A stretch of 64,000 nucleotides of DNA from Epiperipatus broadwayi (lineage: Eukaryota > Animalia > Onychophora), in assembly GCA_028023455.1 (NCBI GenBank), contig JAQFVV010000006.1, positions 3,782,001 to 3,846,000 on the forward strand. Direction: 5' to 3'. Numbering within the stretch: the stretch's first letter is position 1; each line of letters opens with the position of its first letter. The notes under the pieces are model-generated. The model did not search any database, had not been told where the DNA came from, and saw only the letters and a program-made list of their open reading frames with translations. The position numbers and the translations under genes are program-made. Below, one piece after another: positions 3,150 through 20,229 of the stretch.

Positions 3150-4421
3150 ATTTATTCATTGTTTGACATCAGTCTTTTATCAGTTCTATTGAAATTTTTT
3201 ACCAAAATAATTACAACTCGTCTACAGAAAGCACTGGATTTCCACCAACCAAGAGAACAAGCTGGATTTAAAAGTGGTTTTAGTACAGTAGATCATATCC
3301 AAGTATTGAGAGATGATATAGAAAGGATCAATGAATATGAATTGCCATTATACTTTGGATTTATAGGTTATGAAAAGGCATTTGATTCTATAAACATTTC
3401 TTTGATAATTAAGACATTAGATCATCAAGGTATAGACCCAGAATATTGTCATATTCTGAAAAATATTTACAAAAATGTAACAACAATTAGATTTCACAAT
3501 GATACTAAAAAAATAACATTGAGGAGGGTGCATGACAGGGTGATTCCACATCTCCAAAACTTTTTGCAGCAGTTTGGAAAGAAGTAATTTTTGGATTAAA
3601 ATGGTAAGCTAAAGAAGGTAAAAGTAAATGGAGATTATTTAAGTCATTTAAATTTTGCAGATGATGTAGTTGTTTTTGTAAATAATACTTTAGAGCTTCA
3701 GGAAATGTTACAAGAATTATCAGATGAAAATAACAAAGTATGATTAAAAATCAATGTTAAAAAGACTAAAATAATGTTCAATTCATTTTATCAAAAGATA
3801 GGAATAAAAATTGATAATGATTAATTACAAGAAGTTAATAACTACAAATACTTTGGCCAAATCATTACTACAAATGGAAACGCAATTGATGAAATTAAAC
3901 TTAGAATTAAACTTGTTTGGAGTACTTTTGAAAGAAATAATTTAATATTAAAAGGAAATATGCCATTGTGTTTGAAAAAGGTTTTTAATAAATGCATTTT
4001 ACCAGTTCTTACTTATGGATCTGAGACTTAGAGACTTAACAAAAGATCAATACAGAGACTTCAGACTACTTAATGAAGTATGAAGAAATATATGTTAGGA
4101 ATAACAAGTAGAGATTGAAAATGAAATACATGAGTGAGAAAACAAACAGGCGTTATTTACATCATTGAAAAAATTAAAAGACTGGAGTTGGACTGGATAT
4201 ATTGTTGGAAGAGAGGATAATATATGGACAGTTGAAATCTTAAACTGGATTCCAAGAGATTGTAAAAGGCCTAGAAAGAGATTACAAGTGAGATGGATGA
4301 ATGAATAAGGAAGTATGCTGATGTGATGTGGAAAAGAGAAACTAGAGGTTGGAAAAGGTGAATTGAACTTGGTGAGATTCTGCAGTGGATTCATAATGAT
4401 TGAAAATGATGATGATGATAA
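3150..4421 (+). mobile_element. 5'-truncated, decayed RTE-clade non-LTR retrotransposon (RT region to 3' tail)
   Basis: Translated motifs include ISLLSVL.KFFTKII..RL, QPREQAGFKSGFSTVDHI, YEKAFDSI, FADDVV, YKYFG and LTYGSET, interrupted by stops and frameshifts; (GAT)n tail. Confidence 0.92.
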
Positions 4422-18070: not shown

Positions 18071-19730
18071 GGGACATTTATCTTTTATTGTATTTTAATT
18101 TAAATAATTTTAAAAGCAATAAGTGGAAATGTGAAGATTGATTAATATATTTGTAATTCAGCTTACCCGAGCAAGTTATTATTTCCTGAATTTTCCACCA
18201 GAGTGCTCAAATATCACATGACCTTTCAAACAATTAACCATATGATTATTTATATTTAATATAGTCATGAAAAACTGCTTAGGATGTGGGGGTAAATTAA
18301 TGATAAATCTCTATATTGATATCTATAAATATAGATGGTGTATCATTTGTATTTTTACATCTTAATTTTAAGTCCATAAAACTAAATACGTTTTGTGTGT
18401 ATGCCCAATCTATAGGCACCACACTTCTACCTATGTCAGTTTCCATAAATTAAATTGTCTATTTGAATTCGGCAATTATAAAAATTTATTTTAAGGAACA
18501 ATTGGATCAATTTTGATTAGGTGAATGGCTACAAGTAAAAAAATTCACACTTGAAATCATAATTAAGTATTTCTACTGCAACTTTTTTTTGAAAAATCTT
18601 CACCTTTTGGTATCCATACATATAAGAACAATTATTTTCATCCTACCTTAGAACCATTCATTGTAAGCTCGAGTAATCATTATGATGCATGACCTTTTAG
18701 TATCTATTGATTACTAGAGTTTATACTGGGTGAACTATTGTGAAGGGAAAATTGCTATTGCTTCAACAACTTGTCTAAGTATAAAGAAAAGATGATCATG
18801 TGATCTCTTAATGTTTCTAAAGCAATCCAGATTAAAAATAAAGATGTTTATGGTTATTAAAAATATCAACAACACCAAAATATGTAGATAATGTATTGGA
18901 TTCAGATCTGCACAACTATAGAAACAAATTATCTTATATTGAAATTTTTATTGTATTTTCAATTTGGGCTGATAGCTTTATGGTTAATCAAAAAGGTAAA
19001 AGATGGATACTGCAGCAATGCATTGGATTCAAAGCCCTGCTCCAAGATCTACTCCCCATGAAAGACATAAGTTAAAAACTTTTATGGGATTAGCATTGGA
19101 TAGAGATTATGATGCACAAACTTCTAGCAACTATTAATTAATAGATCTTGCACTAAGTGGCACTATTGCAGAAAATTTTTTGCTACAAGTTAACATAAAA
19201 ATTATTGATGTCAACTAAACATTGTAAATCAGCTTCCAGTATTATCAAGTCTGTTTTTATTTCTCTCATTTGTCTATTGAACTGATATGAGTAAAAAAAA
19301 ATTTCCACCATGAGCATTGGGAGCAAAAATGATGATGAAGTAGTTACAAAATTTAAGCATCTCAGAATATTGTTTTCTAAATTTAAATTTATATATAGCC
19401 ATCTATTTTTTAATAATTTACACATACTGTACCATACAGTGTCGTACAATATCCAATAAAAAATGATTGAAATTAGTTAAATACAAGATATTTAGATAGA
19501 ATTATAAATGAAATGGTTATATTAAAATAAAAAGTGGTCAATAAAAGAGGTCATCTCTACCATATCACATCTGAAAACTATAAACACATTAAATTTCCTC
19601 ACATTTGTCAGTTGTTATGGTTATAAGTCAGTTTAAGTTAGATTATTTGAAAAGAATATTGAAAATTTTAATTGCTTAAGGGAATATTTATAATGGTAAA
19701 ATCTTTTCATTAAAATACAAAACCTTGGAC

Positions 19731-19915
19731 CAGTGGTTCACAACCTGTGGGTTGTGACCACTTTGAGTGTTAAACAACCCTTTCACAGGAGTCACCTAAG
19801 ACCATTGGAAAATATGTTTATGATTCATACCAGTAGCAAAATTAAAAGTTGGGAGTCACCACAACATAAGGAACTGTATTAAAGGTCATGGCATTAGAAA
19901 GGTTGAGAGCCAGTG
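19731..19915 (+). mobile_element. hAT MITE resembling SPIN non-autonomous/URR1 elements
   Basis: TIRs cagtggttcacaacct / aggttgagagccagtg; 8-bp TSD ccttggac/ccttagac. The interior (accctttcacagg.gtc.cctaagacc.t.ggaaaa, gattcata.cagtagcaaaatt, gtcaccacaacat.aggaactgtattaaagg) follows the URR1/SPIN consensus as I recall it. Confidence 0.85.
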
Positions 19916-20229
19916 CCTTAGACTGCCCCTACAAGTACAATATGGGACAACAAAAGTCATTGAACAAGATAAAACAATTCCATATGCAAAGATATATGGC
20001 AGGTCTAGTATCAGATTTTGATTATCAGGGCCACTCAGGATTTGAATCCATTTCTAAGTAAAATTATTTTTAAAAGACTTAAAATTGCTGGTTTTTCACC
20101 AATCTTGCTAATCATCCAATATTGGTTCAACAATAGATATCTAGATATTTTTAAAGGACATGTAACCAGGGATGACAAAATTCTCATAATATCACCATCT
20201 TGCAATTGGTGACTAATGGTTGCATTTTT

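Follow-up and report, generated by a model that had tools for sequence, protein, structure and literature searches.

The SPIN transposon and the locus studied

SPIN (SPACE INVADERS) is a Buster-type hAT transposon of tetrapods that has also been reported from Rhodnius prolixus and freshwater snails; among DNA transposons it is the textbook example of movement from one animal phylum to another. A short element carried by the velvet worm Epiperipatus broadwayi raises the question of whether SPIN is present in Onychophora as well and, if so, by which route it came there. The element lies in a 64-kb stretch of DNA, the whole of which was analysed and is called the window below. With a probability of about 0.9, it is read here as a MITE, a non-autonomous form left by internal deletion of the Buster-type hAT element SPIN, which transposes as DNA by cut and paste. 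The host is a Neotropical velvet worm (Onychophora) from Tobago, collected under Trinidad and Tobago permits.

Structure of the element and its family

Positions 19731-19915 of the window (185 bp) formed a complete hAT-type MITE with 16-nt terminal inverted repeats (TIRs) and an 8-bp target site duplication (TSD), in agreement with an earlier note on this DNA. The features of the element were as follows.

19723..19730, + strand: left copy of the TSD, CCTTGGAC, matching the right copy at 7/8 positions
19731..19746, + strand: 5' TIR, CAGTGGTTCACAACCT, from inverted-repeat pairing with the 3' arm
19731..19821, + strand: 5' arm, traced to the 5' end of full-length SPIN by alignment to the bat copy L079
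19822..19844, + strand: short block GATTCATACCAGTAGCAAAATTA of SPIN 3' subterminal origin, by alignment to the long copies and the rodent-like MITE
19845..19915, + strand: 3' arm, 3' TIR included, matched at the 3' ends of L044 and the long copies
19900..19915, + strand: 3' TIR, AGGTTGAGAGCCAGTG, from inverted-repeat pairing with the 5' arm
19916..19923, + strand: right copy of the TSD, CCTTAGAC, an exact fit to NYYTARRN

The two TIR arms (19731-19746 and 19900-19915) were complementary at 13 of 16 positions, and the flanking 8-mers had one mismatch. The element opens with CAGTG, which satisfies the terminal motif YARNG stated for hAT TIRs (PMC3014272).

The published assembly of E. broadwayi consists of 5,601,407,943 bp in 18,588 scaffolds (PMC9985152, Table 1), and the genome searched here comprised 5,601,407,764 bases in 18,588 contigs. 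A search with the 185-bp query revealed at least 1,637 candidate copies. The best 40 of these were scored; all were full-length (86-90% identity) and were distributed over many different Mb-scale contigs. The window element is therefore not a chance pattern. Within the 64-kb window the family was represented by one copy.

Family statistics were obtained from 30 candidate copies aligned with their flanks. The family consensus was 186 bp long, and the mean distance of the 30 copies from it was 7.0% (range 4.3-10.8%); the window copy was 91.4% identical to the consensus (8.6% distant). The TSDs were perfect (8/8) in 14 of the 30 copies and matched at 7/8 positions in 8 more, and the target-site pattern of the sister copies was mostly nYYTARRn. 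The variation among copies clustered at CpG sites (GTCGCGAC, GTCGTGAC, GTCATGAC, and GTTGTGAC variants), as is expected for decay from a CpG-bearing founder.

The GC content of the window was 22-34% throughout, and there was no compositional break at the element. The Rfam search of the window gave no match. Elsewhere in the window, a 142-aa open frame at 3159-3587 (+) matched RVT_1 (E 9e-10) and represents a retrotransposon remnant, and the five remaining open frames with a length of 110 aa or more had no Pfam match.

Terminal inverted repeats and target site

The TIR of SPIN_AC was published as CAGYGGTTCTCAACCT, and the families derived from SPIN have the TSD pattern NYYTARRN (PMC3014272, Table 1). 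The consensus TIR of the velvet-worm MITE family, CAGTGGTTCTCAACCT, equals this published TIR, and the right TSD of the window copy conforms to the published pattern. The earlier note had recognised the element as SPIN-like; with these published features matched, and with full-length relatives that were 90-95% identical to bat SPIN copies, that identification held.

Relation to the rodent-type MITE

URR1 is a rodent non-autonomous SPIN derivative, and the element had at first been likened to this form. A 33-nt block from the 3' arm of the window MITE matched two contigs in metagenome_contigs (L044 and L045), and the same block gave no match in viral_contigs and genome_contigs. L044 contained a complete 227-bp MITE (L044:416-642) with the same ends, lying between GC-rich mammal-like flanks; L045 carried a 3' end and was used only as a 79-nt end match. 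Pace and colleagues are said to have found in 2008 that SPIN is absent from the human genome, and both contigs were therefore taken for rodent-like, not human, host DNA. The MITE of L044 is presumably URR1.

In comparison with L044, the window copy showed 82.6% identity in a 5'-terminal stretch of 69 nt and 89.7% in a 3'-terminal stretch of 68 nt, with a good share of the mismatches being of the CpG-decay type. At the level of the consensus, the velvet-worm MITE and L044 had in common the TIRs, the 5' 69 nt and the 3' 78 nt at about 91% identity (93-97% without CpG-type changes). However, L044 joins the 5' ~70 nt straight to a 3' subterminal stretch that is lacking in the velvet-worm MITE, whereas the velvet-worm MITE retains AGACCATTGGAAAACA..., which is lacking in L044. 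The order in the window MITE was the 5' arm, a 23-nt 3' subterminal block, a 30-bp deletion, and the 3' terminal 71 nt. The 23-nt block was common to the long velvet-worm copies described below and to L044, and the 30-bp deletion after it was seen relative to both. Compared with L044, the window MITE was without two 3' segments kept in the rodent-like form.

Since the internal breakpoints differ from those of L044, the window MITE and L044 are independent deletion products, and the window MITE probably arose independently in the velvet-worm lineage. The view that the interior tracks a SPIN MITE with CpG decay was thus borne out by the identity at both ends, but the breakpoints contradict the view that the differences are just short deletions. 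The identification of the window element as URR1 was rejected on the same breakpoints, with L044 taken to stand for URR1.

Full-length parent elements in the velvet worm

Parent elements were sought with a probe of 97 interior bases of L044, which are mostly absent from the window MITE. The probe had at least 157 candidate places in the host genome, and the best 40 scored 88-93% identical. The places matched were not MITEs, as the repeat extended through the whole 1.5 kb upstream. Both TIRs were 2.47-2.71 kb apart in ten long copies and 3.4 kb apart in one. The search for autonomous copies thus recovered parents of about 2.7 kb with both TIRs, but the transposase frames of the sampled long copies were all broken, the longest open stretch being 204 aa. 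Among the approximately 95 SPIN-type matches listed for the genome, the longest open frame was 311 aa.

The majority consensus built from 11 long copies was 2,719 bp long with one 614-codon open frame, and each of these copies was 5.1-6.8% from it. A natural 170-aa fragment (L069:600-1109:-) was compared with PF05699 (hAT dimerisation) and scored 19.5 bits (E 8e-4), under the curated cut-off of 21.4 bits; the close homologues of this fragment carry precomputed PF05699, PF27046, and PF27073.

The sampled long copies (L066-L077) shared a deletion of about 76 bp adjoining the 5' TIR relative to the bat copy (e.g., L066:2050-2060). The length of SPIN_Og is 2,836 bp (PMC10162687), and the gap between it and the velvet-worm parent of ~2.7 kb is largely accounted for by this 5' deletion. 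Positions 1-93 of the MITE consensus aligned at 88% identity with L079:1674-1766, where the bat copy has its 5' end, and the MITE keeps part of the segment (CCTAAGACCATYGGAAAACA...) deleted from the sampled long velvet-worm copies. The retention of this segment indicates that the MITE derived from a fuller SPIN than the sampled long copies, and that at least two SPIN sublineages amplified in the velvet worm.

Comparison with SPIN copies of other hosts

The outside references were individual copies from genomes or metagenomes, identified only by NCBI protein names and assembly accessions, and not curated consensus sequences. Reference DNA was taken from Rhodnius (L078), Hipposideros armiger (L079), and a Logan contig (L080, SRR23263160). 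L080 was 96-97% identical to the H. armiger copy and was therefore regarded as a tetrapod-type SPIN, this identity being its sole tie to bats.

The velvet-worm consensus had a DNA identity to L080 of 93.5% by BLAST and of 95.0% over 2,241 ungapped positions, rising to 96.3% once CpG-type mismatches were left out. The protein identity was 94% over 614 residues, and codon comparison gave dS 0.146, dN 0.025, and dN/dS 0.17. The consensus was 90-93% identical in DNA to the bat genomic copy L079, 93.7% identical to L044 over the non-coding 3' 158 nt, and 81% identical to Rhodnius L078 (one copy compared). Over the non-coding ends, the velvet-worm and outside sequences were 89-96% identical. The similarity is thus not limited to the TIRs, and the comparison supports an assignment of the element to SPIN proper, with a likeness reaching far past the TIRs.

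Similar results were obtained with natural fragments. An N-terminal velvet-worm fragment was 84% identical to the product of L080, and the 170-aa fragment shared about 79-88% amino acid identity with proteins of bats and R. prolixus [Myotis myotis: 86%; Molossus molossus: 84%; R. prolixus: 82%; H. armiger: 79%], with 72% identity to Hydra vulgaris (P0014) and 66% to the myxozoan Thelohanellus kitauei (P0028). The PDB sequence search with the product of L080 gave no match.

A maximum likelihood tree was constructed from the C-terminal ~170 residues of 40 rows, which comprised the top matches of at least 140 residues and five distant rows. Bats, Rhodnius, Logan rows, and a JGI metagenome row grouped tightly with the velvet-worm rows in one clade (support 95/83), and the rows of Hydra, Thelohanellus, and a 19-row ENA clade lay outside it. 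The bat, bug, and velvet-worm rows were separated by internal branches of near-zero length, and the sister grouping of the velvet worm with Rhodnius was weak (96/71, branch length 0.007). SPIN-like transposases of 65-74% identity form sister lineages in Hydra, a myxozoan, and one eukaryote assembly with many copies; the ENA rows lie within P0012-P0036 (e.g., L082 from ERZ22157276 contig ctg13812l, 2.8 Mb).

Alternative explanations

Three other origins of the sequence were weighed. A mammal or reptile element mis-assembled into velvet-worm sequence, through vertebrate contamination or a chimeric contig, would fit the facts that SPIN is best known from tetrapods and that the nearest outside copies found were bat-type. 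However, the candidate copies number at least 1,637 and are spread across many Mb-scale contigs, the flanks of the window element are as AT-rich as the rest of the window, and the TSDs are built from local sequence. Decay of the copies amounts to 5-11%, and there are subfamilies peculiar to the velvet worm: the MITE is marked by its own breakpoints and the long copies by a common 5' deletion. A chimeric contig, which the earlier note had named as a possible objection, is incompatible with a family whose copies are so scattered and decayed and have TSDs on either side; taken together, the number and spread of the copies, their locally derived TSDs, their decay, and the lineage-specific subfamilies exclude contamination for practical purposes. 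Vertical inheritance of an ancient bilaterian Buster-type hAT, kept alike by selection in velvet worms and vertebrates, can draw on the low dN/dS, which indicates purifying selection on the transposase, and on the related lineages at 66-74% identity in Hydra and a myxozoan. Synonymous sites are saturated across the split between velvet worms and vertebrates, which is older than the Cambrian, and yet dS was just 0.146. The sampled copies are moreover dead and decaying neutrally, and the internal branches joining bat, bug, and velvet-worm rows in the tree have almost no length. The low dS and the highly identical non-coding ends across so old a split exclude vertical descent with practically no room for doubt, as the earlier note had anticipated in calling such conservation hard to reconcile with it. 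A separate SPIN-like Buster lineage, native to panarthropods or other invertebrates and having the ends and motifs alone in common with SPIN, is suggested by the more distant SPIN-like clades (the 19-row ENA clade, Hydra, and Thelohanellus) and by the low identity of the one Rhodnius copy compared. Against this stand the 95% DNA identity to bat-type SPIN over 2.2 kb, the TIR identical to the published one, and the position of the velvet-worm rows inside the clade of bat and Rhodnius rows; on the tree and the DNA identity this origin was set aside as very improbable.

A different objection is that the velvet worm may already stand recorded as a SPIN carrier in Dfam, Repbase, or a paper, so that nothing would be new. 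The genome was annotated with RepeatModeler in 2023, and an automated library could have labelled SPIN. However, the genome paper of E. broadwayi is silent on hAT and DNA transposons (PMC9985152), and the literature found joins Onychophora with neither Buster nor hAT. A previous record is thus considered unlikely, though with an appreciable chance.

Proposed history and age

With these alternatives weighed, horizontal transfer of SPIN into the velvet worm is the only reasonable reading, and the arrival itself is reconstructed from its products. A full-length SPIN would have entered the velvet-worm germ line by horizontal transfer. Its transposase would have recognised the 16-nt TIRs and subterminal sequence and would have excised and reinserted copies, with 8-bp duplications arising at nYYTARRn-like targets. 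Copies with internal deletions but with both ends retained, the 185-bp form among them, may then have been mobilised in trans and have reached well over 1,000 copies. Excision, reinsertion, and mobilisation in trans are proposed from the established behaviour of hAT and Buster elements. The family would then have died, leaving broken transposase frames in the sampled copies, a drift of 5-7% from the consensus, and marked CpG decay. From the broken frames of the sampled copies and this decay, the SPIN family is probably now inactive in the velvet worm.

From the drift of 5-7%, the age of SPIN in the velvet worm may be put loosely at about ten to a few tens of million years, as an order of magnitude only.

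Other observations in the velvet-worm genome

A second hAT family was present in E. broadwayi, with approximately 40% protein identity to the SPIN C-terminus. It comprised dozens of copies with identical scores and intact 636-aa open frames (C6258:1887651-1888136; C485:100770-101255; C14:14734652-14735140; and, outside the window, C6:3478794-3479279). The identical scores and the intact frames suggest that this family has been active recently or is still active.

Nuclear copies of mitochondrial DNA were very numerous (386 COX1 candidates, 97 matches). One of these, L040 (G000:C2:8154334-8158671), translates with TGA stops only and has the order ND2-COX1-COX2-trnD-ATP8, with a trnD of 52 nt; the ND2-COX1 and COX1-COX2 intervals contain no tRNA genes. 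COX1 directly adjoins COX2, without the trnL2 that marks insects and crustaceans, and the COX1 piece was nearest to Arthropoda clusters in the Atlas. These mitochondrial features are in accord with a velvet-worm host. In addition, a divergent H2A/H2B gene pair was present at positions 4229-5356 of L039 (G000:C12446:7108228-7109355), and neither of its exact H2A and H2B proteins was found in a collection of 15 billion proteins.

Novelty and significance

An additional host lineage had been suggested for an apparently invertebrate genome, and the host is an onychophoran. No earlier report of SPIN, Buster, or hAT horizontal transfer in Onychophora was found, in a literature search without the main SPIN papers or Repbase/Dfam; within that literature, the host did not appear as a known SPIN carrier. 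In the search made, the literature treating Onychophora, horizontal transfer, and transposable elements together did not have SPIN as its subject. What is new is the host phylum; the phenomenon itself is well known. SPIN makes up a small share of the E. broadwayi genome, which consists of 71% repeats.

A further-reaching reading makes this the first transposon documented in Onychophora as having arrived by horizontal transfer and places the velvet-worm SPIN closest to the SPIN of the Neotropical bug R. prolixus. It is put forward tentatively and is more doubtful than probable. If it is true, the SPIN exchange network of South America would include a free-living predator of the forest floor, and SPIN could be carried by predation or a shared virus as well as by blood-feeding parasitism.

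The idea of host-parasite contact as the vehicle is based on the invertebrate carriers of SPIN known so far, a blood-sucking bug and freshwater snails. The velvet worm brings in a new phylum and a new ecology, as a predator that lives on land in the same Neotropical region and is not parasitic. SPIN also provides a dated marker for onychophoran genome history and another case for testing how SPIN spread and where.

Comparison with known SPIN systems

The velvet-worm family and SPIN have in common the TIR CAGYGGTTCTCAACCT and an 8-bp TSD of the pattern NYYTARRN. The velvet-worm parent and SPIN both have a single transposase frame of approximately 600 aa, and both have short MITE offspring at high copy number. 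The SPIN_NA families of Anolis, Myotis, and Rhodnius arose in the same way: SPIN lost internal sequence, the shortened forms were mobilised in trans, and they reached thousands of copies; SPIN_NA_12/13_RP are further named SPIN MITE families (Rhodnius). Compared by description, SPIN_NA11_AC (273 bp) and SPIN_NA_9_Ml (311 bp) are longer than the velvet-worm MITE (185-186 bp). The hosts of SPIN are tetrapods and invertebrates that are blood-feeding or linked to aquatic parasites, whereas the velvet worm is a free-living onychophoran predator.
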